This document shows, piece after piece, positions 20,701-42,800 of a stretch of 64,000 bases of DNA. The DNA comes from Macrostomum lignano (lineage: Eukaryota), in NCBI GenBank assembly GCA_002269645.1, contig NIVC01001894.1, positions 124,001-188,000 on the forward strand. The letters are read 5' to 3'. Position numbers and translations under genes: made by a program. Every line of letters begins with the position of its first letter. Position 1 is the first letter of the stretch. A model generated the notes under the pieces. The model had not been told where the DNA came from and did not search any database. It was given only the letters and a program-made list of their open reading frames with translations.

Positions 20701-23488
20701 GGTATTGCCGTTGGGTAAATCTTAAACCATAAATAATGCATTAGATGCCAAATGCATTTTTAACCCTGCAATAATCCACTCTACTAAAATTGAAATTTCT
20801 TAACTAAGTAATCTTTTTTCTCAAATTTACTTAGTAAGAACCGAAAATTCGTAGGTTAATAATCCTAGGAATTCTTAAATTGCTACTAGCCTTAATTTTA
20901 CTCACATTTTGCTACTTGTATGAACTTTGCTGTGATTAGCTTAACTTATTTGATTTTTAATACATCAGTAGCTTCTACCCTTGCGTCTGTGCAACCTGAG
21001 GTCATTGAGTGGCTTCTAACCTTGCATTTGTGCAACCTGAGGTCATTGAGTGGCTTCTACCCTTGCATCGGTGCAACCTGAGGTCATTGAGTGGCTTCTA
21101 CCCTTGCATCGGTGCAACCTGAAGTCATTGAGTGGCTTCTACCCTTGCATCAGTGCAACCTGAGGTCATTGAGCTGCTTCTACCCTTGCATCGGTGGTGC
21201 AACCTGAGGTCATTGAGCTGCTTCTACCCTTGCATCGGTGGTGCAACCTGAGGTCATTGAGCTGCTTCTACCCTTGCATCGGTGCATCCTGAGGTCATTG
21301 AGCAGCTTCTACCCTTGCATCGGTGCATCCTGAGGTCATTGAGCAGCTTCTACCCTTGCATTGGTGCATCCTGAGGTCATTGAGCTGCTTCTACCCTTGC
21401 ATCGGTGGTGCAACCTGAGGTCATTGAGCTGCTTCTACCCTTGCATCGGTGCATCCTGAGGTCATTGAGCAGCTTCTACCCTTGCATCGGTGCATCCTGA
21501 GGTCATTGAGCAGCTTCTACCCTTGCATCGGTGCAACCTGAGGTCATTGAGTCAGTCTTAGTGAGACTATTTTTGTATTTTATCTTTTAAAAATCACCAA
21601 TCAGGAGCTTTAGTAGTAGCTTTATATTAAAGCTAATCATTTAATTATAACTTCTGCATTAAAATGAGTTTTTTCTAGTTGCTAAAACCAGAGCCTTGTG
21701 TTGCTTTGAATCGCTAAAAATGTCGTCCCGGTCCTGTTTTTTTCAGCATTCACTCGCAGGGGTAAAACTGCTATATTGTTTATCTTGAAGAGTTCAGTTC
21801 ATTAATTTGCAGTTTGCTTTTTACACTGTTTATTTAACGAGAGTTCAATAATTGGAGTTGCACTATTGATGTTTAAAAACGACGGCATTTTATTCTGCCT
21901 AGAAATTAAAAGTTAGTAAAATTTTGCATGATCGTACGAGCTATGTATCATCAGTTACTAAGTTTTTATATTTTTATTACTGACTAATTTTGTGCTCAAA
22001 GTTAACTAACGGATTTTCAGATAGAAAAGTTTTTGCTATCAATCGGAGTGCTATTAGCACCCATAAAGTTCCGCTGTGTTTAATAGAAGGACGAGAAGAA
22101 CTTCGTTTCTTAGAAAGCCTTTTGTTACTGGAACTCTTTTGTGCCAAAAAACGACAAGTTCCTAAATCCGTGGTGGATTTTAGCAACCCCAGTCTCCTGA
22201 TATGTTCTTAGAAACGAGGTTTCCCGTCCTTAAACTACTAAAGTCGTCCTTGGACCTGCCTCTAGAGCGTGTTCAGTATTTATCTAATAATATACATTTT
22301 AAAGGATATAAAAAGTACAAATTTCTTAATCCATTTTCAGGAATTCGACCCAGAAACTTTTGTACACGACGTTGAAGTTGAGGTGCCGAATACCGAGATT
22401 TACAAATTTGACGGCACTGTGTACGTTGACTATCTCTATGAATTTTGACTGCCAGCTAGTCTTTGTTTCACTGTAGGAATACCAATGCCCTTTTTCCGTA
22501 CGTCGAACTACTAAAGGGGAATCCCCCTGACAATTTTTTTGCTGCGCCTGAACGGAGAAGCGCAGGCACACGAAATTCAATACTCACTGATGTCATCTGT
22601 TGAAGGTTCCGACAGCGTCGGGATGATACTAGCTGAGGATGTCCAGCAGTTGAGGCTTGCCCACTGCCGAGGCTTGATCATCGATACTAGAGAAGTTCGC
22701 AACCATAGTCACCTGGTGCTATCTGTTGAAGGTCCAGAAGGCCAGTGACCAACGAAGTCAGAGCTGATGCAGACCCATGTGATCCACGTGCTGATGAAAT
22801 TTGGAGGCTTGGCAAGGCTGCACTGAGGGGTGTACTGAATACACTGGCGCTTATAGGAAAATCCGACCTTCTGGCAGAATCGTCGAATATCTCGACGGTC
22901 CGGAGGGCTGACGACTTGATTCTTCTTAGCCCGTGTTCTTCAATTTCGTGTGCCTGCGTTGCTTCATTCGGCCCCCCACCCTTGGTAGTTCTACTGTTAA
23001 TTAAAAATGTTTCTAAGATTTTTAACCTTCACTTTTACAGGCGCATCCGAGGCGCCGATGATAACGTTGTCGCCATTCATAAGGAGAATCTCATTCTCAG
23101 AGGCTGCACTATTCGCAATACCAATTCCGTTGAGGGCATGGTTATTTATGCTGGTAAGGCCTGGCTCTGCTTTATAACCTGTGGCTGTTGTGTTTTGCTG
23201 ACTTTCTGTATGCTAAGTCTTCTGTGTTTTATGTTTTTTAAAGGTTCAGTCATAAGGTGTAATAATTTATCCTCTGCAGTAAGGTTTTTCAAATTCAAAA
23301 CTTTATCCAAGGTTTCTTGGTAAAATTTTTCACGGGGGAGCACTGCAAAAGTTCCTATTGCACTTGAAGAGGAGCGTTTTCTGCATGTATTTGTCTGTCT
23401 GGATGACTGTATGTTTGTCTGTCTGTCCTGTCTGTCTGTCTGTCTGTCTGTCCGTCTATCTGTCTGTCTGTCTGTCTGTCTGTCTGTG

Positions 23489-23537
<49 letters not shown>

Positions 23538-23544
23538 GCCTGCC

Positions 23545-23581
<37 letters not shown>

Positions 23582-23582
23582 A

Positions 23583-23645
<63 letters not shown>

Positions 23646-23808
23646 TAGTGTCTTAGTGTCTGTCTGTCTTAGTGTCTGTCTGTCTGTCTTAGTGTCTGTC
23701 TGTCTTAGTGTCTGTCTGTCTGTCTTAATGTCTGTCTGTCTTAGTGTCTGTCTGTCTTAGTGTCTGTCTGTCTTAGTGTCTGTCTGTCTTAGTGTCTGTC
23801 TGTCTTAG

Positions 23809-26900: not shown

Positions 26901-29900
26901 GAGAAGCAGACTCAGGGACTGCTGAGTGAGCAGAGAGGCAGACTCAGGGACTGAGTGAGCGGATAGGCAGACTCAGGGACTGAGTGAGTGGATAGGCAGA
27001 CTCAGGGACTACTGAGTGAGCGGATTGGCAGACTCAGGGACTGAGTGAGCGGATAGGCAGACTCAGGGACTACTGAGTGAGCGGATAGGCAGACTCAGGG
27101 ACTGAGTGAGCGGATTGGCAGACTCAGGGACTGAGTGAGCAGAGAGGCAGACTCAGGGACTGAGTGAGCAGAGAGGCAGACTCAGGGACTGAGTGAGCAG
27201 AGAGGCAGACTCAGGGACTGAGTGAGCAGAGAGGCAGACTCAGGGACTGAGTGAGCAGAGAGGCAGACTCAGGGACTGAGTGAGCGGATAGGCAGACTCA
27301 GGGACTACTGAGTGAGCGGATAGGCAGACTCAGGGACTACTGAGTGAGCGGATAGGCAGACTCAGGGACTACTGAGTGAGCGGAGAGGCAGACTCAGGGA
27401 CTGAGTGAGCGGAGAGGCAGACTCAGGGACTACTGAGTGAGCGGATAGGCAAACTCAGGGACTGAGTGAGCGGATAGGCAAACTCAGGGACTACTGAGTG
27501 AGCAGAGAGGCAGACTCAGGGACTGAGTGAGCGGATAGGCAGACTCAGGGATTGAGTGAGCGAATAGGCAGACTCAGGGACTGAGTGCGCGGATAGGCAG
27601 ACTCAGGGACTGAGTGAGCGGATAGGCAGATTCATAGACAAGTAGTACAAATACTTTAACAGGTGAGAGGAAATCTGCACTCTTGACACCTGCTTCTGAA
27701 CAGTAAAACTTTATTTACAAACTCAACCCTTCATCAGCTCAGTTAATTACGCTCTAGTCTTTTGAAGCGGACAAATAGTTACTTCTATTTTCTAATGTCG
27801 GTTTCCTGTGTGGTCATGCGCGCGCACACTTTATGTTGTTGTCAAACATAAATGTATGCTTTAATTAACAGTAAGCGTTAACAGTAAGCTACCTTCACCT
27901 GAGACAGAGAGAGAGCACTGATGCTATCTTTCTCGTCTGGTATATTTAGAATCGTTAGTATTCTTATGAATTTTTTATTTTGGTATATTTTCTACATTCT
28001 GGTTATTTTACTTTTTTGGTTACTCACAGTAGCAGGAAACGGCGTCGTGCTCCTATATTTTAATATTTACCTTAAAATCAGTGTCTACTTTTATTATTCA
28101 TCTGTGGCGAGTGTGTGGTTCTGAAATCGTCTTTATCTGACTGTGTTGTATTGCTTCCTTGATGCATTTCACTGAAATATAATAGATTATAATTATTATT
28201 CTTAATTAGAACTTACATTTTATCGCCAATTATTTAATTTTTCCAGCCGACAGCCAGGCCAGCATTGAGTGCAGGCAGCCGATTCTGGACGGCGGCAATC
28301 AGAAGCGAGACTGTGACTTTGATGTGAGTCATTGTGGCTTTGTGGCTATGTAGCTAATCCCTGTAACCATAAAGATAATCATGCAGCTGATCCCTGTGAC
28401 CATAGAGATAATCATGTAGCTAATTCCTGTGACCATAGAGATAATCATGTAGCTAATCCCTGTGACCATAGAGATAATCATGCAGCTGATCCCTGTGACC
28501 ATAGAGATAATCATGCAGCTGATCCCTGTGACCATAGAGATAATCATGCAGCTGATCCCTGTGACCATAGAGATAATCATGCAGCTGATCCCTGTGACCA
28601 TAGAGATAATCATGCAGCTGATCCCTTTGACCATAGAGATAATCATGTAGCTAATCCCTGTGACCATAGAGATAATCATGTAGCTAATCCCTGTGACCAT
28701 AGAGATAATCATGTAGCTAATCCCTGTGACCATAGAGATAATCATGCAGCTAATCCCTGTGATCATAGAGATAATCATGCAGCTAATCCCTGTGATCATA
28801 AAAATATATTCCCCCGGACCGCAACACCGCCAGCCGGAGCCGCAGTGTGCGGACGAGACCTGCCAGTCTCCACCGCCGCCGCCGCCAACAACGCTGACCC
28901 GCTCGCCAACCTCCGAGCTCGCCGACGCCCTGGCAGCCCCGGACGGTCCCAGCCTTCGGCGAGTCACTTCGCTGCGTCAACGTCGCCTGCTCGACTTCTT
29001 CCTAGTGATGGCCGTCTGCAACTCTGTGGTTGTGTCGATTGACCAGCCGGCCTCGGAGTCGGCCGCCGATTCCACGGCCACTTCCGCTACTTCAGTTGAC
29101 AGCGCCGTCAAACGATGGAAACGCCAGGTTTGGCGCCGAAAAGCGCCGCCGGCTGCGTCGTCGGAATTGTCGGCCTCGGCTGCGGTGGCGGCGTCTGCAG
29201 CGCCGACGCCGTCGTTGACGCCGTCGCCGACCCCGCCAACACCGCTGGTGCTGGAGACCGATCAGCTGTCAGCTGGCACGCCGGAGCCGTGTCGGTACAC
29301 GGACGCCGAGCTGACCAAGGCCTACGTGGCCGAGAGTCCAGACGAAGCCGCCCTGGTCCGGGCCGCGTGCCGCAGCGGCTGCAAGCTGGTGCAGCGGGAC
29401 GCCGACTCCTGCCTGGTCTGGCTGCCAGCCGACGGTCACGTCCGCCTGCCGCTGCTCTGCGTTATGCCGTTCGACGCCGACCGGAAGCGGATGTCGGTGC
29501 TAGTGAGGGACCCGGCCACCAACCGGCCAATGCTGCTAACTAAAGGTGCCGATTGCGCTGTGCTGGACCGGCTCCGGCCGTCCGACCCGGCTGATACGGA
29601 CTCGGACGCTGACCGGGTGCTGCTGCTCACCCGGCTTCACATGGAACAGTACTCCGTGGCCGGCCTGCGCACCCTGTGTCTGGCTGTCCGCTACCTGGAC
29701 GAGGCCGAGTACGCCGATTGGCTGGCCGAGTACACCCTGGCTCAGCGGCGCATCCAGGGCCGGGAGGCCGCGATGGCACGGGCGTTCGACCGGTTAGAGG
29801 CCGGTCTGGAGCTGCTGGGCGCCACCGGCGTCGAGGACCGGCTGCAGGAGGGCGCTGCGGACACCGTGGCCGCGCTGCGAGAGGCCGGCATCAGCGTCTG

Positions 29901-32900
29901 GGTGCTCACCGGAGACAAGCAGGAAACTGCCGTGCAGGTGCGAGACCGTCTGGACAGGCATATTGAGTCTTTTGAGTCTGGACAGGCATATTGAGTCTTT
30001 TGAGTCTGGACAGGCATATTGAGTCTTTTGAGCCTGGACAGGCATATTGAGTCTTTTGAGCCTGGGCGGGCATATTGAGTCTTTTGAGCCTGGGCGGGCA
30101 TATTGAGTCTTTTGAGCCTGGGCGGGCATGTTGAGTCTTTGAGTCTAGGCGGGCATTGAGAATTTTGCCCCCCACATAGTCAGCTTAGCCCTGTTTGTAC
30201 AAGCTGTATACAGCTCTTGGATACGCCTCGCAGCTGCTGCAGTCAACGGTTTAAATGGTACTGCAGTCAGAGGGGATGTGAATGATACTGCAGTCAGAGG
30301 GGATGTGAATGATACTGCAGTCAGAGGGGATGTGAATGATACTGCAGTCAGAGGGGATGTGAATGATACTGCAGTCAGGGGGATGTGAATGATACTGCAG
30401 TCAGAGAGGATGTGAATGATACTGCAGTCAAGGGGATGTGAATGATACTGCAGTCAGAGGGGATTTGAATGATACTGCAGTCAGAGGGGATGTGAATGAT
30501 ACTGCAGTCAGAGAGGATGTGAATGATACTGCAGTCAAGGGGATGTGAATGATACTGCAGTCAGAGGGGATGTGAATGATACTGCAGTCAAGGGGATGTG
30601 AATGATACTGCAGTCAGAGGGGATGTGAATGATACTGCAGTCAAGGGGATGTGAATGATACTGCAGTCAAGGGGATGTGAATGATAGTGCAGTCAGTGGG
30701 AATGTGAATTTTGCAATCGATACTGTATTGGTATTGTTAAACTGCAGGTATCGCAGATCACTAGGCAGAATTGTGCCAGCCCAGAGAGCTAGTGATACTA
30801 AGAGTTAGGTCTGCTGTTTGCCTATACTCCGAACAGTAGAGTGACTAAAACTCAACACTCACTCTCAGGTCGGCCATGCCTGCCGCCTGCTCACCGAAGG
30901 CCAACAGCTGTTGACGCTGGTCGCGGATTCTCCCGCCGAGGCTGGCGACCGGGTTCGCCGCTGGCTTCGCGAACTGGACGTGGCCTACAGGCCGGCCTAT
31001 CAGATCCGGCAGCGTCGGGCTCGGCCAGCTGTACGCGACGGCGTCGCCCTGGTGCTGGACGGCCGGGCACTGCGCCACTGCCTAGACGAGTTGGTCAGCT
31101 GCGATTTCCTACTGCTAGCTGAGCAGTGCTCAAGCGTGCTCTGCTGCCGGACTACGCCTAGCCAAAAGGCCGCCGTGGTCGGCCTGGTCAAGGAGAGCCT
31201 CGGCATGCAGACTCTGGCCATCGGCGACGGCGCCAACGATGTCAGCATGATCCAGACGGCCGATATTGGCGTCGGCATCTCCGGCCAGGAGGGCATGCAG
31301 GCCGTCATGGCTGCCGACTTTTCTCTGGCTAGGTTTCGCTTTTTAAAGAAGCTGCTGCTAGTGCACGGGCACTGGTGCTACGACCGGCTGGCTAGGATGT
31401 CTCTGTACCTGTTCTACAAGAACTGCGTCTATATTATGATGCTGTTCTGGTATCAGCTTTTCAATGGCTTTAGCGGACAGGTAGGTACAATATGGCTGGC
31501 TTTATTTGAGTGTGTGAATTGATTTTTCCGGTTTCGCATAATATTAGTTTGAATAAATATTGAAACGTTTCGAAATATCAGTTAACAAATGTTTAATGAA
31601 TATCGAAGTTAACTGCTGCAGAAGCAGAAAAAGCAGTTGTTGCAAGCAGCAATAGAATTCAGATTTTAGCAATGTTGCAGAAGCAGGTATTAACAATGTT
31701 GCAGAAGAATTCATTAGCATTGTTGCAGAAGAATTCATTAGCATTGTTGCAGAAGAAGACATTAGCATTGTTGCAGAAGAAGTCATTAGCATTGTTGCAG
31801 AAGCAGATATCAGCAATCTTGCAGAAAAAGTCATTAGCATTGTTGCAGAAGAAGTCATTAGCATTGTTGCAGAAGCAGATATTAGCAATCTTGCAGAGGA
31901 AGTCATTAGCATTGTTGCAGAAGAAGACATTAGCAATGTTGCAGAAGACATTAGCATTGTTGCAGAAGAAGACATTAGCATTGTTGCAGAAGCAGATATT
32001 AGCAATGTTGCAAAAGAAAACCATTAGCAATGTTGCAGAAAAAATCATAAGAATTGTTGCAGAAGAAGACATTAGCAAGATTTTAAAACCCAACCTGGGT
32101 CCCAAAAACAGGTAAACATCGGCCAGGTGTACCAGATCTGTTTCAATCTAACTATGACGTCACTGGGCCCGCTAGTTATCGGCATATTGGACAGGCACCT
32201 GAGCGCAGAGATTCTCATGGCTAATCCGGTGCTGTACACGGACGCTCAGAATTGCCGCAGCTATCTGCCCTGGCATTTCTGGCTCAACATACTAGACGCT
32301 GTTTGGCAATCTCTTGTCGTCTTCTTTGTTGCCTATCTCGGCGCTATGGATACGGACTGCGGCATTTGGAGCTTCGGCGACACCGTGGTCAGCGCCGGGG
32401 TCATCACCGCTGTGGCGCACAACGCGCTGGAGGTGCGCGGCTGGACCGGCCTGCACTGGTTTGCGCTGCTGGGTGAGTTGGGCTTCGCTTGGCGTAGCTG
32501 ACAGCTTTCCGGGCTTGTGTATGGGTGCCTAGTTAATACAGGTTATGGTAGGCGTGCTTCTGCGTTTGTTAGGATTCTAGATTGATGAAGAATCTGCTTT
32601 TATGGGGATTATGAGTTGATAAGGATTATGAGTTGATAGGGATTATGAGTTGTTAGGTAATATGAGTTGATAAGGATTATGAGTTGTTAGGTAATATGAG
32701 TTGATAAGGATTATGAGTTGATAAGGATTATGAGTTGATAGCGATTATGAGTTGATAAGGATTATGAGTTGATAAGGATTATGAGTTGATAAGGATTATG
32801 AGTTGATAGGTATTGAGTTGATAAGGATTGTGAGTTGATAAGGATTATGAGTTGATAGAGATTATGAGTTGATAGGGATTTTGAGTTGATAAGGATTATG

Positions 32901-35582
32901 AGTTGATAGGTATTGAGTTGATAAGGATTGTGAGTTGATAAGGATTATGAGTTGATAGAGATTATGAGTTGATAGGGATTTTGAGTTGATAAGGATTATG
33001 AGTGGATAAGGATTATGAGTTGATAAGGATTATGAGTAGATAAGGATTATGAGTTGATAGGTATTGAGTTGATAGGGATTGTGAGTTGATAGGGATTATG
33101 AGTTGATAGGGATTATGAGTTGATAAGGATTATGAGTAGATAAGGATTATGAGTTGATAGGTATTGAGTTGATAGGGATTGTGAGTTGATAGGGATTGAG
33201 TTGATAAGGATTATGAGTTGATAAGGATTATGAGTAGATAAGGATTATGAGTTGATAGGGATTATGAGTTGATAAGGATGAGTTATGAGTTGATACCTAT
33301 CCTAAGAGTTGATAGGTATTGAGTTGATAGGGATTGTGAGTTGATAGGGATTGTGAGTTGATAGGAATTATGAGTTGATAAGGATTATGAGTTGATAGGG
33401 ATTGTGAGTTGATAGGGATTATGAGTTGATAGGGATTGTGAGTTGATAGGGATTGTGAGTTGATAGGGATTATGAGTTGATAGGCATTATGAATTGATAA
33501 GGATTATGAGTTGATAGGGATTGAGTTGATAGGGATTATGAGTTGATAGGGATTATGAGTTGATAGGGATTATGAGTTGATAGGGATTATGAGTTGATAG
33601 GGATTATGAGTTGATAGGGATTATGAGTTGATAGGGATTATGAGTTGATAAGGATTATGAGTTGATAGGGATTGTGAGTTGATAGGGATTGTGAGTTGAT
33701 AGGGATTATGAGTTGATAGGCATTATGAATTGATAAGGATTATGAGTTGATAGGGATTGAGTTGATAGGGATTATGAGTTGATAGGGATTATGAGTTGAT
33801 AAGGATTATGAGTTGATAGGGATTGTGAGTTGATAGGGATTGTGAGTTGATATGGATTTTGAGTTTTATATAGTAGGGACTCTGAGTTAATACAATTTAT
33901 TTAATTGATTGAATTTCTCAGCCAATTAAGATTCTGGATTGATGATGAGGAATCTGTTGGATGTTCCGCTGCTCAAGCACCCAAAAAATGGCGATCGCTT
34001 AAATCCCCATTTCATCTTTTCCTTTCGTACAACAGGTAGCCCTCTAATCGCCTGGTTCGCCTTCGCCATCGTGCTAAACCTGGTCTGCACCAACTGCCTG
34101 CACCCGGACAACCCCTATTACGTAATTGTGCACGGCCTGACCACCGCCCGGTTCTGGCTGCCCCAGCTGCTGGCCCCGGTGCTGGCGCTCACGCCCAGGC
34201 TGTGCGTGCGCGCCTATCGGAACACTACGCGCTCGAATCTGACTGCCCAGGTCTGGCCCTAAAGGGGGGTGGCGCTAATTAATAGTACTTAAGTTAGACA
34301 CCTAACTGAGCAGTCGATGTAGAGACAGTCATCACAGATACTATAAATAGATGGGTCCGCGACATTTCACTGCCCCAATGTGACTGGTGATCCTAACCAT
34401 AATAATAATTTAATAATAATTGATTACACCTGCCCCAATTGGGCCAGATGTGCAACCGACAGCTCAGCCGCAGCCATTGCGCGGCGCATCTGAAGGCTGC
34501 GTACGGCTGTTCAGTCCAAGGGTCGCCACACACAGCCTCAATTACCCCAGCTAATGCTGGCACCCATTTTACAGCTGGGTGAACTGAAGCAATGCAGAGT
34601 TAAGTCTCTTACTCAAGGACACAAATTGTTCCTAGTGGGTCGAGAATCGAACCCCCGACCTTTCAGTCGTGAGTCCGACTCTCTAACCACATAGGCTGCA
34701 ACCCCGTCTTTCAGTTCAGTAGAAGCATCTTAATGTACTTTAGGACAAGAATTTCAAGACTTTTCACGCTAAATGAGTGCCGATACCTCGAGGCACAGAG
34801 GGTGTACACCCCGTGTGAGCGGTGCCTGTGAATGTATATCCGTCTGTATGCTCAGAGTTCAGCAAAAATAGGCAATTATTCCCCGGCTCTCTCATCAGGC
34901 TTTGCGCCATCAGTCATCGGCCGCGTCCACTCGTTCTACCAAGCCCGCCTGGCTTCTATCGCCGTCGGCTGCGACTCGCCGTCGAAACGGCGGCGGCAGC
35001 AGCGGTGACGCTGTCGAATTGGCCACCGCTGGCAACTTCGACGGAGCGGCGGTGGCCACCGGAGCCGCTGGCATCATCTCTGTTGGCGGCGAAGTCGGCC
35101 TATCGACCAGCAGCGACCCGCACCGACTGCCGCTGCAAACTCGGCCGCGGACTTTTCCGGGCCCGCCGCCTACGGCTGCCGCTCTCACAGCGCTGTCGTC
35201 TCGCAGTCTGTCGTTTTTAGTCCGCGGCAACGGCAGCGGCGTCGGGGGCGGTCGTCGGGTTCGAACTCGAAGCGCCTCTTCGGCGGCGGCAACGGCGGCT
35301 GCTGGACGCCGGGCCAGCTGGCGGCATCGCAGCAGCGCAGGCGGCAACGGCGCCGACTGGCCGATCGCGCTTGACGGAGCGGCCACGGCGCCGCCTCAGC
35401 GCCGCAGTAAAAGCGTTTGCTCCCGTCCTGCTGCTGCTGCCTCCGCCACCGCTACTCCGGCCACTGCTGCCGCCCCCGCCGCCGCTGCAGCCGTTGTCTC
35501 CTCGGACGACAGCGCGGCTACCATGTGCGACTCCGGCAGTGACAGCTGCGGCGCCGTTCCCTGCACCACCACCAGATGCTGA
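17708..35582 (+). CDS. ATP10: P4-type ATPase phospholipid flippase, ATP10A/B/D class (~1459 aa, 12 exons)
   Basis: Exons 17708-18310, 22341-22420, 23041-23153, 24739-24870, 24955-25085, 25433-25700, 28247-28323, ~28834-29937, 30869-31480, 32112-32472, 34036-34250, 34899-35582. All are AG/GT bounded and phase-compatible (4380 nt). Motifs: [47 protein letters not shown]. The exon 8 acceptor is uncertain. Confidence 0.9.
18590..18800 (-). mobile_element. SINE group 2 copy whose head is replaced by the 38-bp array and LTR
   Basis: Shares GGCCAACCCCC..AGAGTGTACATGC..AGGGCCGCTGTACACCCTGTGTGAG with the copies at 42.0-42.3 kb and 53.3-53.6 kb. Confidence 0.6.
18797..20045. repeat. 38-bp minisatellite split by a solo LTR (arms 18797-18952 and 19948-20045)
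   Basis: Unit GGAATCAAACCAAGGACTACTCAAGTAGGAGGATGCAC. Confidence 0.9.
18953..19947 (-). mobile_element. Solo LTR (995 bp), probably Gypsy-type
   Basis: TG..CA ends with a short inverted repeat (TGAAGT/ACTACA) and 4-bp TSD CACG (18949-18952, 19948-19951). TATAAATAGG lies on the minus strand near 19395. An internal direct repeat contains TGACGTCA. Confidence 0.8.
20972..21550. repeat. 41-44-bp minisatellite (ATPase intron 1)
   Basis: Unit CTTCTACCCTTGCATCGGTGCAACCTGAGGTCATTGAGTGG. Confidence 0.9.
22561..22958. mobile_element. Putative short TIR element in ATPase intron 2
   Basis: Perfect 17-bp inverted repeat CGCAGGCACACGAAATT (22561-22577) and AATTTCGTGTGCCTGCG (22942-22958). No TSD found. 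Confidence 0.45.
23388..23945. repeat. (TCTG)n microsatellite with TTAG variants
   Basis: Read directly from the sequence. Confidence 0.95.
24352..24640. repeat. Compound 34-bp then 29-bp minisatellite
   Basis: CAGATCCTCAGTTGCTGGGCCACCGTCACCCTCA followed by CAGATCCTCAGGCCGAGCAGCCTCACTCC. Confidence 0.85.
25790..26075 (-). mobile_element. tRNA-derived SINE group 1 (CORE-like domain)
   Basis: The reverse complement reads TAGCCTAGTGG (A box), GGTTCGATTCT (B box), then GTGTCCTTAAGTAAGAGACTTAACTC..CCAGCTGTAAAATGGG. Near-identical to 34427-34704. Confidence 0.85.
26905..27630. repeat. 29/32-bp minisatellite (ATPase intron 6)
   Basis: Unit GACTCAGGGACTGAGTGAGCGGATAGGCA. Confidence 0.9.
28350..28800. 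repeat. 33-bp minisatellite (ATPase intron 7)
   Basis: Unit CCCTGTGACCATAGAGATAATCATGCAGCTGAT. Confidence 0.9.
29948..30150. repeat. 28-bp minisatellite starting ~10 bp after the exon 8 donor
   Basis: Unit GGACAGGCATATTGAGTCTTTTGAGTCT. Confidence 0.85.
30258..30710. repeat. 26-27-bp minisatellite
   Basis: Unit GATACTGCAGTCAGAGGGGATGTGAAT. Confidence 0.9.
31665..32075. repeat. 24-bp minisatellite (ATPase intron 9)
   Basis: Unit TTAGCATTGTTGCAGAAGAAGTCA. Confidence 0.9.
32605..33865. repeat. 18-bp minisatellite (ATPase intron 10)
   Basis: Unit GATTATGAGTTGATA(A/G)GG. Confidence 0.95.
34427..34704 (-). mobile_element. tRNA-derived SINE group 1 (CORE-like)
   Basis: Same sequence as 25790-26075, with a (TAA)n-type tail at 34395-34425. 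Confidence 0.85.
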
Positions 35583-35689
35583 CGGCTGACTGGCTGATTT
35601 GAGAGCTTGATTGATTCATTCATTAACTAAAGTGTTATTAAATCAACCGATACTTTAGCTAAATTGCTTTCACTTCTAAGTAGCTGCTC

Positions 35690-36165
35690 GACTGTCTCTT
35701 GTCCTTCAGCAGCTGCCTCACTGCCTCCAACTTGTCCTTCAGCAGCTGCCTCACTGCCTCCAACTTGTCCTTCAGCAGCTGCCTCACTGCCTCCAACTTG
35801 TCCTTCAGCAGCTGCCCCCAACGCCTCCATCTTGTCCCTCAGCGGCTGCCCCCAACGCCTCCATCTTGTCCCTCAGCGGCTGCCCCCACGCCTCCATCTT
35901 GTCCCTCAGCGGCTGCCCCCAACGCCTCCATCTTGTCCCTCAGCGGCTGCCCCCAACGCCTCCATCTTGTCCCTCAGCGGCTGCCCCAACGCCTCCATCT
36001 TGTCCCTCAGCGGCTGCCCCCAACGCCTCCATCTTGTCCCTCAGCGGCTGCCCCCACCGCCTCCATCTTGTCCCTCAGCGGCTGCCCCCAACGCCTCCAT
36101 CTTGTCCCTCAGCGGCTGCCCCGCAAGCGGCTGCTCCATCTTGTCCCTCAGCGGCTGCCCCACCG
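35690..36165. repeat. 33-34-bp minisatellite just 3' of the ATPase stop
   Basis: Unit CCTCCATCTTGTCCCTCAGCGGCTGCCCCCAACG. Confidence 0.9.
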
Positions 36166-36974
36166 CCCCTATATTCCTTGAGATACAGCTCTGTAATTTA
36201 TTGATTTGCAGACTAACATAACGGAAATTTCACAAATACCCAGACTCAATGCTTTCCATACCAAACCGATAAGTTCGCTAACGTATTCATATTGAAATGT
36301 TTTATTAGCTGAGACAGTCGCACATTTCTGTTAGCGCAATATCCAAGACACTATGGTGCATTCTGTATTATTTATTATTCATTTATTCAATTTGACAATT
36401 ATATCAAACTTTCAACACACTCTACTCAATATTATTATTACTATTAGGTTTCTATAATCAGCATTTGTGTTTGCATCAGTGCATTCTGTTTATAACCCTG
36501 TAATTGTTAGAGTTTATACCTATTGTCTTGTCTCGTATGCGTCTTAGCTTATGTATAAATAATATGTACTTCTATTACTCTGTATTACTATTACTATACT
36601 AATTAATGCACAATCGCACAGACTTAATAATTCCCACAATTATTAATTATTGCTACGGAAACCGCACCTGTTTAGATGTAAATGCATATGATTGAAGATA
36701 TTATTTTTATTACCTTTTTGTTTCTTCTCACAGCCGGAGTTGAGAAGGCTGGAATAGCTGGCGCGGCTGTCTAACCGGATGCTTTGTTAAATTAGCTTTT
36801 CTTACCGTGATTACTGCAATCATATTGTATTATTATTAACTTCTTTGTGGTACGCTTGTACTATTTTACAAGTATTTTCTATTCTATTCGAGACAGTTGT
36901 GTTTTTTTAGATAATTGGCGGTTTGTGTATTGTACTACACATGATGTTTTCTTTGTTCATTGGTTTTTAGCATA

Positions 36975-37620
36975 CTGTGCCAGCCTGGGGTTGCCAGCTT
37001 GGGGGTTGCCAGCTTGGGGGTTGCCAGCTTGGGGTTGCCAGCTTGAGGGTTGCCAGCTTGGGGGTTGCCAGCTTGGGGTTGCCAGCTTGGGGGTTGCCAG
37101 CCTGGGGTTGCCAGCTTGGGGATTGCCAGCTTGAGGGTTGCCAGCTTGGGGATTGCCAGCTTGAGGGTTGCCAGCTTGGGGGTTGCCAGCTTGAGGGTTG
37201 CCAGCTTGGGGGTTGCCAGCTTGGGGTTGCCAGCTTGGGGGTTGCCAGCTTGGGGTTGCCAGCTTGAGGGTTGCCAGCCTGGGGTTGCCAGCTTGGGGAT
37301 TGCCAGCTTGAGGGTTGCCAGCTTGGGGATTGCCAGCTTGAGGGTTGCCAGCTTGGGGGTTGCCAGCCTGGGGTTGCCAGCTTGGGGATTGCCAGCTTGA
37401 GGGTTGCCAGCTTGGGGATTGCCAGCTTGAGGGTTGCCAGCTTGGGGGTTGCCAGCTTGAGGGTTGCCAGCTTGGGGGTTGCCAGCTTGAGGTTGCCAGC
37501 TTGAGGTTGCCAGCTTGAGGGTTGCCAGCTTGGGGGTTGCCAGCTTGAGGGTTCTGCCAGCTTGAGGGTTCTGCCAGCTTGAGGGTTCTGCCAGCTTGAG
37601 GGTTCTGCCAGCTTGAGGGT
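36975..37620. repeat. 15-16-bp minisatellite
   Basis: Unit TTGCCAGCTT(G/GA)GGG. Confidence 0.9.
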
Positions 37621-38294
37621 CCAGCTTTGGGGTTTTGGAGCTGCCAGCTTGAAAATGTCTAGTTTAGGGCTGCAAGCCAGAGTATTTCTACTTGTAATTG
37701 CCTCAAGCATTATCAGTGCAGCGCAGTCCCTGGCTCAGTGTGTAGGCAATGTGTATCGCATATTAATTTTGCTCTTTCATTTAGCAAATCTATTCTATCA
37801 GTTTTATTCTATACGCAATATTTTTCAGAGCTAAAAATAGTATTTCCAGAGCTCATTAGCGGCCAGTCAATGACATGGGCATCACGCCTGGTAGCAGTCT
37901 TTGCGTATTCTATATAATGCCCTTTTGGGGCTTTTTAAAACTTTGTTTCTGATCTTTTTAACACAGAAAGTAACCGTTTTGTTTACTTTTTATTGACAGT
38001 TATTTTTCATCGATAAGTACCCCATGTACTTTTTTTTGGCTTCACCGGCACCAGCTGGTGGAGCTCGGTAGAGTTTGGTTGGATGATGCTTTTTAGTCTG
38101 TCATTCCGGCAGTTTGTGTTTTTACATAAATTTAACTGATGAAAAATACAATTCCGCATATATCTATTATACTGTGTTCAGAACTCCTGAAATGCTTTCG
38201 ATGAGCACTAAGAATGCAACGAATACTGATAAAATCAATTTCTGCGGTTCTTTGCTGCTCGCGCTTCATTTATTTGCTACTTCACCACCGCCCA

Positions 38295-38940
38295 CCGCCT
38301 CCACGTTGTTCCTCAGCAGCTGCTCCACCGCCTCCATCTTGTCCCTCAGCGGCTGCCCCCAACGCCTCCATCTTGTCCCTCAGCGGCTGCCCCCAACGCC
38401 TCCATCTTGTCCCTCAGCGGCTGCCCCAACGCCTCCATCTTGTCCCTCAGCGGCTGCCCCCAACGCCTCCATCTTGTCCCTCAGCGGCTGCCCCAACGCC
38501 TCCATCTTGTCCCTCAGCGGCTGCCCCCAACGCCTCCATCTTGTCCCTCAGCGGCTGCCCCCAACGCCTCCATCTTGTCCCTCAGCGGCTGCCCCCAACG
38601 CCTCCATCTTGTCCCTCAGCGGCTGCCCCCAACGCCTCCATCTTGTCCCTCAGCGGCTGCCCCCAACACCTCCATCTTGTCCCTCAGCGGCTGCCCCCAA
38701 CACCTCCATCTTGTCCCTCAGCGGCTGCCCCAACACCTCCATCTTGTCCCTCAGCGGCTGCCCCCAACACCTCCATCTTGTCCCTCAGCGGCTGCCCCCA
38801 ACACCTCCATCTTGTCCCTCAGCGGCTGCCCCCAACACCTCCATCTTGTCCCTCAGCGGCTGCCCCCAACACCTCCATCTTGTCCCTCAGCGGCTGCCCC
38901 GAACACCTCCATCTTGTCCCTCAGCGGCTGCCCCCAACAC
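38295..38940. repeat. 33-34-bp minisatellite with the same unit as 35690-36165
   Basis: Unit CCTCCATCTTGTCCCTCAGCGGCTGCCCCCAAC(G/A). Confidence 0.9.
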
Positions 38941-39279
38941 CTAGTCCTAGTTCAAAAATTTTATGTCGTTTATTGCGCAGCAGAAAATGCCAAGTGTGGT
39001 TTTATTTTATTAAAATGAGATTTATCGCTATTTAGCTTTTACTTTCAGCATTTTTCACACTAATATTAAATTAGCTGCAATTAAATATAAATTATAGCGA
39101 TTATATGTAGTGAAGCTATACTACCAACTCAGCTGATATTTTAATGCGCAATATGTGATGACATTTACTGCACTCTAGTATGTATATATTGTACACAATC
39201 GCAGAGCCAAGAAGAGAGCAGTAATCATTATCTGACAATCGCCAAGGCTCTTGAGAAAATACGAATCAGCAGCGCAACT

Positions 39280-39492
39280 ATGCGAGTCCTTCAGCTCTGC
39301 CTGTTTCTGTGCGTCCTCTGCTCGGCCGTCCTGGCGAGACCGCCGCCTATGGAAAGACCGTATTCTGCCGGCACGCAGGGCGCTGGCGACGGCAAGATCA
39401 TCGTCTGTATGGATTCGCCCCTGCAGACGGTGACAGATAGACCTCCACTGACTCCTCCTGCTTGGCCAAGGCCTGGCCGGAGGACTGATTGA
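39280..39492 (+). CDS. Small secreted protein, putative amidated neuropeptide precursor (70 aa)
   Basis: ATG with A at -3, hydrophobic signal-like N-terminus MRVLQLCLFLCVLCSAVLA and C-terminal PPAWPRP-G-RR-TD. It is a GC-rich coding island in AT-rich DNA with AATAAA at 39561-39566. Confidence 0.65.
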   Translation: MRVLQLCLFLCVLCSAVLARPPPMERPYSAGTQGAGDGKIIVCMDSPLQTVTDRPPLTPPAWPRPGRRTD

Positions 39493-39874
39493 CTGACTTG
39501 AGAGTTCGAAACGACTTGTTAAAGACGTCTTGAACAGATTAATCGGATATCAATATATATAATAAAGCATTGAAGATTTTTTTCTACAAGCAAAGGGTAT
39601 AATAATACATGTACAAAGTATAATACAATTCCAGGTAATTAATTTCGCGGCGAATATCAGTTCGAAGTCGACTCGGCGATATGAATTCGAATCAGATTGT
39701 AGTATGGTAGTCAGGCACTGCAAAGCAAGCTATTGCGGTTGATTGTAGGGGCATAGGCACACTGAATCCTGCACAACTGTGCTTATCGCGTGTGGTCCCA
39801 TCTTCAACTCCCAGACTGCCAATAAAGCTTATCAATCAGTTCTCAGACTGCCAGCCACCTCCAGTCGGCAGTTC

Positions 39875-42800
39875 TCATCGAAGAGACTCAAGAAACACTA
39901 GCTGCTCAACCAGGCCGGCAGCCTCAGCATCCGAGGTGATTTCGCGCAGCCTGAGCGCTTTCTGTGCTGCGCTACGGCCGGCGCTGGTCGTCAGGTAGCT
40001 GTAGACCGCAGCGAAGTCGAACGCGCCGTCGCTTTCAGCGGCGCGTCGTTCGCAGCGCCGGCGCAAGTCGCTCAGCGTCCGGTCGAGGCCGGCCTGACCG
40101 AAACGCGATCCGGTCGCCTCGTCCGGCGCGTCCTCGAAGGCGCTGGCCAACCGGCCGCTGCGGGCCAAGGCCGCCTCGAGTTCCTGAGCGAACCGCAGGG
40201 TGGTGTCGCAACTGGCGCCGGCAGCCGCGGCTGCTGCGTCCTCTCGCTCTTCATCTTGAGCTTCCTCATCGAAGTCGGGCGTGTAGTAGGTGTCCGCCAG
40301 CTCAGGGTTGACCATTGCGGCTTCTCTGATTGGCTGTTTTCGGTCTGGGATTTGGACAGCGGCGTTTATGGGATTTGGGATTCGGAATGCGACGTTTATG
40401 GGATTTGAATGATGCATTTATGGGATTTAAATGATGCATTTATGTGATTTTGGGATTCGGAATGCGACGTTTATGGGATTTGGGATTCGGAATGCGACGT
40501 TTATGGGATTTGAATGATGCATTTATGGGATTTAAATGATGCATTTATATGATTTTGGGATTCGGAATGCGACGTTTATGGGATTTAGGATTCGAAAAGT
40601 GACGTTTATGGGATTTGAATGATGCATTTATGGGATTTAAATGATGCATTTATGTGATTTGGGATTCGGAATGCGACGTTTATGGGATTTGGGATTCGAA
40701 AAGTGACGTTTATGGGATTTGAATGATGCATTTATGGGATTTAAATGATGCATTTTTGGGATTTGGGATTCGGAATGAGGCATTTATGGGATTTGGGATT
40801 CGGAATGCGACGTTTATGGGATTTGAATGATGCATTTATGGGATTTAAATGATGCATTTATGTGATTTTGGGATTCGGAATGCGACGTTTATGGGATTTA
40901 GGATTCGAAAAGTGACGTTTATGGGATTTGAATGATGCATTTATGGGATTTAAATGATGCATTTATGTGATTTGGGATTCGGAATGCGACGTTTATGGGA
41001 TTTGGGATTCGAAAAGTGACGTTTATGGGATTTGAATGATGCATTTATGGGATTTAAATGATGCATTTATGTGATTTGGGATTCGGAATGCGACGTTTAT
41101 GGGATTTAGGATTCGAAAAGTGACGTTTATGGGATTTGAATGATGCATTTATGGGATTTAAATGATGCATTTTTGGGATTTGGGATTCGGAATGAGGCAT
41201 TTATGGGATTTGGGATTCGGAATGCGACGTTTTACGCACCCTTGAATTGGAATCCGGAATGCGGAGTTTATGGGTTGGGAGCTCGTGCTTCGTTTATTTT
41301 ATTCATTCGTATAATATTTAATGTATTCTATAGTTAATTTTTTAATCGAAAAATCCTTTCATTGCTACTCATAGTAAAAAAACCAGCCCCTGCCACTGCA
41401 AACCTCGTCTCCCATCGGCACCCGACGGTACGAGGTCGTCGCACTCCTCGGCGTCGGCTTCATCCTCAGACTGTTGCGGCTCCTCCTCGGCCAGACCCAG
41501 CGCCGTCAGCAGCGCTGCCGAGCGTCGTCGGTCGACTCGGTCGACGCCGTCGCCATCGGCCGTGGACTCCGCGCGAAGCAGCCGCCTGCCGGCGCCTCCG
41601 CCGCCGCCGCAGCTGGCCTCGGCCGCGGCCGCCTCTTCGTGGATCTGCTTCGACCGGCGGCGCAGGTGCGGCTCCCGCAGCAGCTCTCTGGCGCTGGCCC
41701 TCCGCTGAGGCTCCTTCTCCAGCATCCGCTCCAGCACGGCCTGCAGCGCCCTGGGATATCTGTCCGGCAGGGTGGGGCAGGGATCTTCGCAGATGCTGAA
41801 CAGGATCCTCATCAGGCCGTGCCCGGTGTACGCGTGCTCCTGGGCGCACATCTCGTACAGGATGCAGCCGACACTCCAGACGTCGCTCTTGGCGTTGTAG
41901 CCTGGTTACAATAATAACAATAATATTAATAATAGTAATAATAATAATAATAATAAATAACATGATAATTGCAAGAGTGTTCTGAAGACTTTTTAGTCGA
42001 GCACATTACTCATACACACGCTCACACAGGGTGTACAGCAGCCCTGACTTTCTAATCGTCAGGCATGTACACTCTCTCAGGCATGTACACTCTCTCAGGC
42101 ATGTACACTCTCTCAGGCATGTACACTCTCTCAGGCATGTACACTCTCTCAGGCATGTACACTCTGTGCCTTGGGGGGTTGGCCCTCGTGGGTGAAAATT
42201 TCATGACAACCCCACGGACAATTTTCGTGCACAAGGCCCAAATGAATGAGGCCGAATGTGGAATCGAACCTGGGATCGTGGCGCGAGAGTTAGACCCGTT
42301 CACTACTGAGCTGCTCTGCCCCTGAGGGAGCAGGAGTATAGTGTGTCTACACCCTCACAGACCATTGGTTACGAGGTCTCAGGTTGATGACCTAGCTGTC
42401 CTTACCCGAAAGAAGCATCATGGGGCATCGGTCTCTCACATCTCTGAAGGGTCGGGACCCGGTAGCAATAATACACATTGATGCAGTCTGTGTTAAAATA
42501 AAACTTTCTCCCGTGCCTCACCCTGATGCTTGAGCAGTTCCGGACTCATAAAGTACGGCGTCCCCAGAAAAGTAGTGGCCATGTCCACCGAATTCATGAG
42601 CACCCGAGCGATGCCAAAGTCGCCAATTTTAACCATGCCGCCCTTTAAAAATACGTTTTTCGTCTTCAGATCCCGGTGTAAAATCCGCTTCCCGTGCAGG
42701 TACTCGACGCCTAGGAGGATCTGGATCAGCCAGCGCTCAGTGGTGGCCACGGGCAGGTGCAGACCGGCCTTCTTCAGGCGCTGGATGGCCTGGTCCAGGT

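Follow-up and report, generated by a model that had tools for sequence, protein, structure and literature searches.

Organization of the candidate peptide locus

Translation of the window, i.e. the whole 64-kb stretch of Macrostomum lignano DNA that was analysed, confirmed a 70-codon open reading frame (ORF) at 39280-39492 of the + strand, which runs from ATG to TGA and encodes MRVLQLCLFLCVLCSAVLARPPPMERPYSAGTQGAGDGKIIVCMDSPLQTVTDRPPLTPPAWPRPGRRTD. The features identified in and around this ORF are the following (positions are those of the window).

39183..39189 (+): TATATAT, a TATA-box-like sequence with a putative promoter role, about 40 nt 5' of the start implied by the GenBank model
39203..39204 (+): AG dinucleotide, candidate cis- or trans-splice acceptor; the exon of the UniProt model A0A1I8F4J5 begins at 39205 (..RLHL followed by SQEESSNHYLTIAK..)
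39229..39279 (+): 5' untranslated leader, read in frame as YLTIAKALEKIRISSAT in the 5'-partial GenBank model PAA54369.1
39280..39336 (+): signal-peptide-like leader MRVLQLCLFLCVLCSAVLA, with predicted cleavage between VLA and RPP; ATG with A at -3 (39277)
39337..39474 (+): predicted 46-residue propeptide or mature peptide RPPPMERPYSAGTQGAGDGKIIVCMDSPLQTVTDRPPLTPPAWPRP, with 11 Pro and one Cys
39475..39483 (+): Gly66 (predicted amide donor) and Arg67-Arg68 (predicted dibasic convertase site), the same in the second genomic copy
39484..39492 (+): Thr-Asp C-terminal dipeptide and TGA stop
39561..39583 (+): AATAAA (39561-39566) and, behind it, seven consecutive T (39577-39583), polyadenylation-site-like; the hexamer starts 69 nt past the end of the TGA
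39875..40309 (-): last coding exon and stop of a NEK11-like kinase, a convergent neighbour outside the peptide gene

The elements from which the initial annotation had deduced a candidate amidated neuropeptide were all recovered at these positions, namely the 19-residue signal-like leader, the Gly-dibasic site G66-R67-R68 lying two residues ahead of the stop, the A at -3 of the ATG, the polyadenylation signal at its distance from the stop and the upstream AG, directly behind which A0A1I8F4J5 opens an exon. The leader is hydrophobic, with a best 10-residue Kyte-Doolittle mean of 2.9, Arg2 in the n-region and, on heuristic grounds, a cleavage site ahead of R20 in which V occupies -3 and A occupies -1. 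Since no ATG occurs in 39190-39279 of the + strand, any transcript starting in this interval would have its first ATG at 39280; the reading frame itself is open 5' of this ATG back to about 39150. The ORF lies in a GC island (57-62% GC at 39200-39500) that matches the extent of the transcript and is flanked by DNA of 26-35% GC.

The tail-to-tail arrangement with NEK11 described earlier also stood: the neighbour is a minus-strand kinase with its stop at 39875-39877, the best named relatives of which are 'Nek11-like' proteins, and its best structure matches (NEK1, NEK7 and NEK2) assign it to the NEK family. On the minus strand past the kinase stop, no AATAAA, ATTAAA or common variant was found until 39190, 39169, 39145 and 39011, all of which lie beyond the ORF. 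The 3'UTR of the kinase may run antisense through the peptide ORF, and the strand of RNA evidence matters because the two convergent genes may overlap in this way. A structured non-coding RNA at the peptide locus was considered and rejected, as a search of 38900-39900 against Rfam returned no match at E<=1.

The peptide gene has GC-rich minisatellites on both sides, in which spurious ORFs reach lengths of up to 276 aa. At 38291-38942 there are about 19 tandem copies of a 34-bp unit, with copies of the same array detected by blastn at about 35697-36175; at 36978-37634 a 15-bp unit occurs about 44 times in a row; and a 104-bp unit is present in about 8.5 copies at 40346-41232, just upstream of the last coding exon of the kinase. 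Short tandem repeats at 42031-42325 give rise to HVHSLR and MYTLSG pseudo-ORFs between kinase-coding ORFs. An origin of the Pro-rich C-terminus of the peptide from the 34-bp minisatellite, the ORFs of which read ..RLPPTPPSCP.., was discarded, the local DNA alignment score of 17 being equalled by 120 of 500 shuffles.

Annotation and transcription

The closest database match to the ORF is GenBank PAA54369.1 ('hypothetical protein BOX15_Mlig023984g2, partial', Macrostomum lignano), an 87-aa model that is 99% identical, ends in ...PPSWPRPGRRTD and agrees with the window ORF in strand and frame. Its 17 additional N-terminal residues correspond to the 5'UTR read in frame (window 39229-39279) and are best explained as translation of this 5'UTR, because the transcript has no in-frame stop there. 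The model belongs to a sister copy of the locus, and the expectation that annotation would easily miss such a gene was therefore borne out in part only: the sister copy carries an annotation, albeit that of a hypothetical protein, but the copy in the window is absent from the protein collection, as judged by exact look-ups that included three 5' variants. Apart from the NCBI and UniProt entries, no record of the window ORF, its 5' variants or A0A1I8F4J5 was found on public contigs or in public clusters, and the identifier Mlig023984 was not found in the literature text or the M. lignano paper supplements searched.

The annotation of the M. lignano assembly was built on RNA evidence only, combining StringTie and TACO transcripts with de novo assembly (PMC5730564). 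Transcripts were cut at experimentally determined trans-splice and poly(A) sites, processed with TransDecoder and then filtered, and unstranded transfrags were left out (PMC5730564). Since PAA54369.1 is thus RNA-derived, the peptide gene is probably transcribed, and from the + strand, although this evidence is indirect. A transcript-based model on the sister copy, in the same strand and frame, supports the earlier reading of the ORF as a gene.

A second copy of the locus and a chimeric gene model

The sister copy is located on NIVC01002923.1 and is collinear with the window, its peptide ORF being preceded on the same strand by a P4-type flippase and met from downstream by the convergent gene of a 508-aa protein kinase. 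Window positions 29026-49678 align to NIVC01002923.1:47123-67386 with 93-99% identity, the differences residing mostly in repeat copy number. The M. lignano genome is known to be duplicated and neopolyploid (PMC5730564; PMC10733133), and the double flippase/peptide/NEK11-like neighbourhood fits this recent genome duplication.

The two copies differ at four positions in the 213-nt ORF (three synonymous changes and Ala61Ser) and at six positions in about 760 nt of flanking DNA. The ORF is intact in both, and G-RR is retained in the second copy, but this copy is a 99%-identical duplicate. Three synonymous changes out of four have a probability of P=0.059 under neutrality, and this excess appears suggestive only; the substitution rate in the ORF is not below that of the flanks. 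Because the two loci are about 99% identical in coding and non-coding DNA alike, their comparison has no power to detect constraint or conservation of the GRR.

A further model, UniProt A0A1I8F4J5 ('PhoLip_ATPase_C domain-containing protein', 1579 aa), originates from an older assembly and corresponds to window positions of about 29000-42000. Its parts are flippase exons, ORFs of the minisatellites, the first 36 residues of the peptide ORF up to a frameshift, and NEK11-like kinase exons read in antisense. Its read-through of minisatellites, its frameshift and its antisense kinase exons identify it, as far as its composition tells, as a chimeric artefact prediction, and for this reason the use of AG 39203-39204 as a splice acceptor is only a candidate assignment. 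The frameshift may stem from faulty assembly or from a third copy that is broken.

Search for relatives

An exhaustive HMMER search (phmmer) of 1.84 billion representative proteins detected no relative of the peptide outside M. lignano. It returned four matches, i.e. the sister copy, A0A1I8F4J5 and two spurious low-complexity hits. A word-indexed protein search found the sister copy only and missed A0A1I8F4J5 despite the 36 identical residues that it has in common with the query. When the neighbouring kinase was used as a control, the word-indexed search retrieved nothing with an exon-1 query, and with a 253-aa query it retrieved Nek11-like proteins of other phyla and missed the M. lignano kinase. 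Since an annotated M. lignano kinase is also missed, a result of 'no homologue' from the word-indexed search is weak for this species. The absence of orthologues is likewise weak evidence, because the presence of other Macrostomum species in the libraries is not demonstrable and the word search misses the kinase. No paralogues were found within the window by tblastn. No cnidarian protein was matched by phmmer, a result that carries little weight as short repetitive precursors are hard to detect.

Small gene or chance ORF

We give about an even chance to the reading that the locus is a small, independently transcribed, single-coding-exon gene of M. lignano encoding a secreted prepropeptide, from which an amidated peptide is predicted to be released. 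Counted against it are the orphan status of the peptide, the slightly negative codon score, the chance expectation for such ORFs, the frameshifted third model and possible antisense transcription. These points bear on an alternative that we consider unlikely, in which a chance or very young (de novo) ORF lies in a transcribed GC-rich patch, the leader and the GRR are coincidental and no functional peptide is made. The transcript would then be a non-coding RNA, read-through from the flippase or antisense 3'UTR of the NEK11-like kinase. The chimeric A0A1I8F4J5, which links the ORF exon to the flippase, and the lack of a poly(A) hexamer on the minus strand between the kinase stop and the far side of the ORF are both consistent with such sources. 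Against them, the GenBank RNA pipeline, from which unstranded transfrags were excluded, called a separate + strand gene.

How often an ORF of this kind would arise by chance was estimated from the window itself. A total of 188 ATG-initiated ORFs of at least 40 aa are present, 15 of which pass a deliberately crude signal-peptide filter and three of which carry G[KR][KR] in their last 12 residues. The peptide ORF is the only one of the 188 with both a leader and a C-terminal G-dibasic, and about 0.24 such ORFs are expected per window by chance, so that the protein features alone do not go beyond chance. The VCLS repeats near 23.4 kb (23138-23656) also pass the crude filter, and filters of this type are easily fooled in this DNA. 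Precursors with one cleavage site and one peptide copy form the class of neuropeptide predictions with the most false positives. The length of the open frame is not exceptional either, as an 87-codon frame at 60% GC has, by calculation from base composition, about a 6% chance of being open per frame, and the leader is encoded by a pyrimidine-rich tract, which would read as Leu/Phe/Cys/Val in one frame.

Coding statistics point in both directions. A codon log-odds table was trained on 897 codons from exons of the adjacent flippase and kinase genes. By this table the annotated frame ranks first among the six, which speaks for a gene, yet its score is -0.15 per codon, where most of the neighbouring exons reach +0.3 to +0.7. 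GC content by codon position is 0.63/0.59/0.64, compared with 0.66/0.46/0.73 in the reference, without GC3>GC2 periodicity. Neither codon usage nor positional GC is thus gene-like, but the atypical values are explained in part by the richness of the ORF in Pro, Ala, Gly and Cys. The comparison of the two copies is similarly divided, the three synonymous differences out of four arguing against a chance ORF and the substitution rate (4/213 nt in the ORF and 6/~760 nt in the flanks) being what a chance ORF would show. The failure of phmmer to find a homologue elsewhere also falls on the side of chance.

The case for a gene is lifted above chance by the coincidence of the ORF with a set of + strand signals that are correctly placed around it (the TATA-like box, the first ATG with its Kozak A, and the poly(A) signal with its T-run), with the GC island and with the transcript-derived model. 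If the ORF should nevertheless not be a real gene, it would serve as a reminder that a leader together with one G-dibasic arises by chance about once per four 64-kb windows in this genome.

Predicted processing and product

According to the established cleavage rules of prohormone convertases, Arg-Pro bonds and a lone Lys without a basic residue at -4, -6 or -8 count as non-sites. The 51 residues that follow the predicted signal cleavage (VLA before R20) contain five basic residues ahead of GRR. Four of them (R20, R26, R54 and R64) are each followed by Pro, and the fifth, K39, has no basic residue at -4, -6 or -8. By these rules RR67-68 is the sole predicted canonical convertase site in the precursor. 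The doubt raised previously about the N-terminal cleavage was justified, since R54 precedes Pro and no usable mono- or dibasic N-terminal site was found.

If the small-gene reading is correct, the precursor would enter the ER and lose its 19-residue leader by cleavage after Ala19, a prohormone convertase would cut behind Arg67-Arg68, an enzyme of the carboxypeptidase E type would take off both Arg, and the flatworm PHM and PAL activities would convert Gly66 into a C-terminal amide on Pro65. Flatworms possess both PHM and PAL. Because every internal Arg precedes Pro and no other convertase site is present, the default product would be the 46-residue Pro-rich peptide R20-P65-NH2, which contains 11 Pro and a single, unpaired Cys and carries a net charge near +1; this Cys43 could allow a disulphide dimer of the 46-mer. 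The most likely product, going by the predicted sites, would be this 46-mer or a C-terminal fragment of it ending in WPRP-NH2. Under bilaterian processing rules a short ...WPRP-amide would not be set free and a long peptide is likely, since the shorter RPPLTPPAWPRP-NH2 (a 12-mer) would require a non-canonical, cnidarian-style cut after Asp53. The computed monoisotopic masses are 4951.5047 Da (Ala form) and 4967.4996 Da (Ser form) for the amidated 46-mer and 1382.7935 Da for RPPLTPPAWPRP-NH2.

The Pro-rich amidated C-terminus would be the likely receptor-binding and protease-resistant end of a secreted signal, which could be a neuropeptide, a peptide hormone or an amidated gland product. The gene anatomy and the transcript-derived model are in place at the locus, and secretion, cleavage, amidation and a signalling role are what they would predict; the narrower term 'neuropeptide', as against any other secreted amidated peptide, is an inference.

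A gland product of a different kind was also weighed. In this improbable alternative the gene encodes a real small secreted protein (of gland, epidermis, gut or seminal fluid) and the GRR is incidental or a trimming site rather than the mark of an amidated signal. The signal-like leader and the Pro-rich, probably disordered body would suit many gland proteins, and the lack of an N-terminal processing site would leave a polypeptide of 46-51 residues, which is not a typical short neuropeptide. Planarian 'prohormone' genes, moreover, are often expressed in reproductive glands rather than in neurons. Fast evolution of reproduction-related secreted genes in Macrostomum, as reported in PMC7336406, would explain the orphan status of the peptide. 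Against a non-amidated protein, a calculation from residue composition gives fewer than 1% of random secreted proteins with G-[KR]-[KR] among their last five residues, and single-copy amidated precursors such as flatworm NPF and NPY canonically finish with a Gly-dibasic and a short acidic tail. Mlig023984 is absent from the reproduction-related supplementary lists searched, which says little as these lists appear to contain no Mlig identifiers of this type.

Finally, it is very improbable that the ORF is the 3' exon of a longer transcript joined through AG 39203-39204, with Met1 internal and the leader not N-terminal: the open frame upstream to about 39150, the 5'-partial flag of PAA54369.1, the start of the A0A1I8F4J5 exon at 39205 and the estimate that polycistronic precursors make up about 7% of the transcriptional units of M. 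lignano (PMC5730564) would accommodate it, but A0A1I8F4J5 crosses minisatellite ORFs, a frameshift and kinase antisense, the donor would fall within the 34-bp repeat at a non-consensus GTCCCT, and a polycistron resolved by trans-splicing would still yield a separate mRNA with its first ATG at 39280.

Comparison with known peptide systems

Taking the amidated-peptide reading as the working one, the predicted product can be set beside several known families; these resemblances would mean that it works like them, not that it belongs to them. Pyrokinin, CAPA and neuromedin-U PRXamides and the molluscan small cardioactive peptides (compare FPRV-amide, FPRM-amide and PRN-amide-GRR) share with it an aromatic residue followed by Pro-Arg-X-amide. 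In the pyrokinin-type peptides X is Leu, Val, Met or Asn, whereas it is Pro in the candidate; no homology was detected, and the planarian pyrokinin-like ppl-1 is a different gene.

With NPY and NPF the candidate shares the general layout of signal, peptide of 36-46 aa, G-[KR]-R and extension (19 + 46 + GRR + TD in the candidate). It differs from them in ending W-P-R-P instead of R-x-R-[F/Y]-amide, or R-P-R-L in the atypical npy-11. An NPF/NPY identity was rejected on account of this missing R-x-R-F/Y-amide end and of a C-terminal half too rich in Pro for a helix, the presence of seven Pro in the last 13 residues ruling out an alpha-helical C-terminal half. No NPF or NPY was matched to the peptide ORF by phmmer.

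The initial annotation had drawn a parallel with the PRPamides of sea anemones. The parallel holds in that PRP- and PRX-amides are a recognised group and that WPRP-amide is a hormone of the hydrozoan Clytia, but as the organism is a free-living flatworm, the likeness is at the level of the motif only. The Antho-RPamide-like subgroup of PRXamides includes LPPGPLPRP-amide (Anthopleura), QPPLPRY-amide (Helix) and AAPLPRL-amide (Urechis), and Pro-amide and PRX-amide peptides, Pro-rich lophotrochozoan ones included, are established bioactive peptides (PMC7266959). These peptides have a Pro-rich run followed by P-R-X-amide, as in the predicted ...RPPLTPPAWPRP-amide, which would end in a Pro-amide like Antho-RPamide. 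They are, however, short (7-9 residues) and released by defined processing, whereas the candidate has no cleavage site near the motif and would give a 46-residue product: R54 is followed by Pro, and it would take cnidarian-type processing at D53 to produce a 12-mer. The subgroup is itself defined by its motif, without demonstrated homology.

In the literature searched, every report of WPRP-amide concerns cnidarians and no flatworm PRP-amide is described; the WPRPG motif otherwise occurs there only in snake bradykinin-potentiating peptides, which were judged irrelevant. WPRP-amide is the oocyte maturation-inducing hormone (MIH) of Clytia, and AWPRP-NH2 and DAWPRP-NH2 were among the Che-pp1/Cpa-pp1 candidates synthesised. 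The hydrozoan MIH precursors (Clytia Che-pp1 and Che-pp4, Cladonema Cpa-pp1; W/RPRX-amides) resemble the candidate in carrying a C-terminal WPRP followed by Gly. The MIH motif W/R-P-R-X-Gly-basic is present as W62-P63-R64-P65-G66-R67, the window copy has AWPRP-G, as in the synthesised AWPRP-NH2, and the sister copy has SWPRP; a single motif copy is also found in Cpa-pp1. The active form of Clytia MIH is the free tetrapeptide, 5-6-mers being far less active, and the precursors are usually multi-copy with products of 3-6 residues. Unlike these precursors, which come from another phylum and to which phmmer detected no similarity, the candidate has no processing site beside the motif and would release no tetrapeptide. 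That the peptide is related to the hydrozoan W/RPRP-amide spawning hormone and, through an MIHR/NPY/luqin GPCR, would control gamete maturation or release in this hermaphroditic flatworm is the least credible of the readings considered and highly improbable. If this reading were true, cnidarian MIH and bilaterian reproductive neuropeptides would for the first time be connected at the level of the ligand. The exact match of WPRP-amide to a jellyfish spawning hormone offers a cheap and specific experiment, since existing anti-PRPamide antibodies and synthetic peptide can be used.

The planarian spp, npp and npy prohormones (Collins et al. 2010, PMC2953531) resemble the candidate in having precursors of 70-80 aa, a 19-aa signal, a C-terminal Gly-dibasic and a short tail. 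Smed-npy-11, an 80-aa precursor with a 19-aa signal, one 46-aa peptide ending in SRPRL-amide, GKR and a short tail (PMC2953531), shares with the candidate the length of its single peptide and a P-R-x-amide end, WPRP-amide being predicted here. No sequence similarity was detected between the candidate and the planarian prohormones, and its C-terminal half is Pro-rich where theirs forms an amphipathic helix. They end in Phe-, Tyr- or Leu-amide as opposed to the Pro-amide predicted here, and neither PRPG nor WPRP occurs in the 51 planarian prohormones. The planarian set is backed by mass spectrometry and in situ hybridisation, the candidate by sequence and a transcript-derived model. Among these 51, many lack relatives in other animals, and for several the site of expression is a reproductive gland and not the neurons (PMC2953531). 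Set beside them, the M. lignano peptide is a plausible and reasonable candidate for a lineage-restricted amidated precursor of a flatworm. If real, it would extend the flatworm repertoire by a Pro-amide peptide, a type not found among the 51 planarian prohormones searched, and would represent a species- or genus-restricted amidated peptide in M. lignano, in which transgenesis and RNAi allow direct tests of function.
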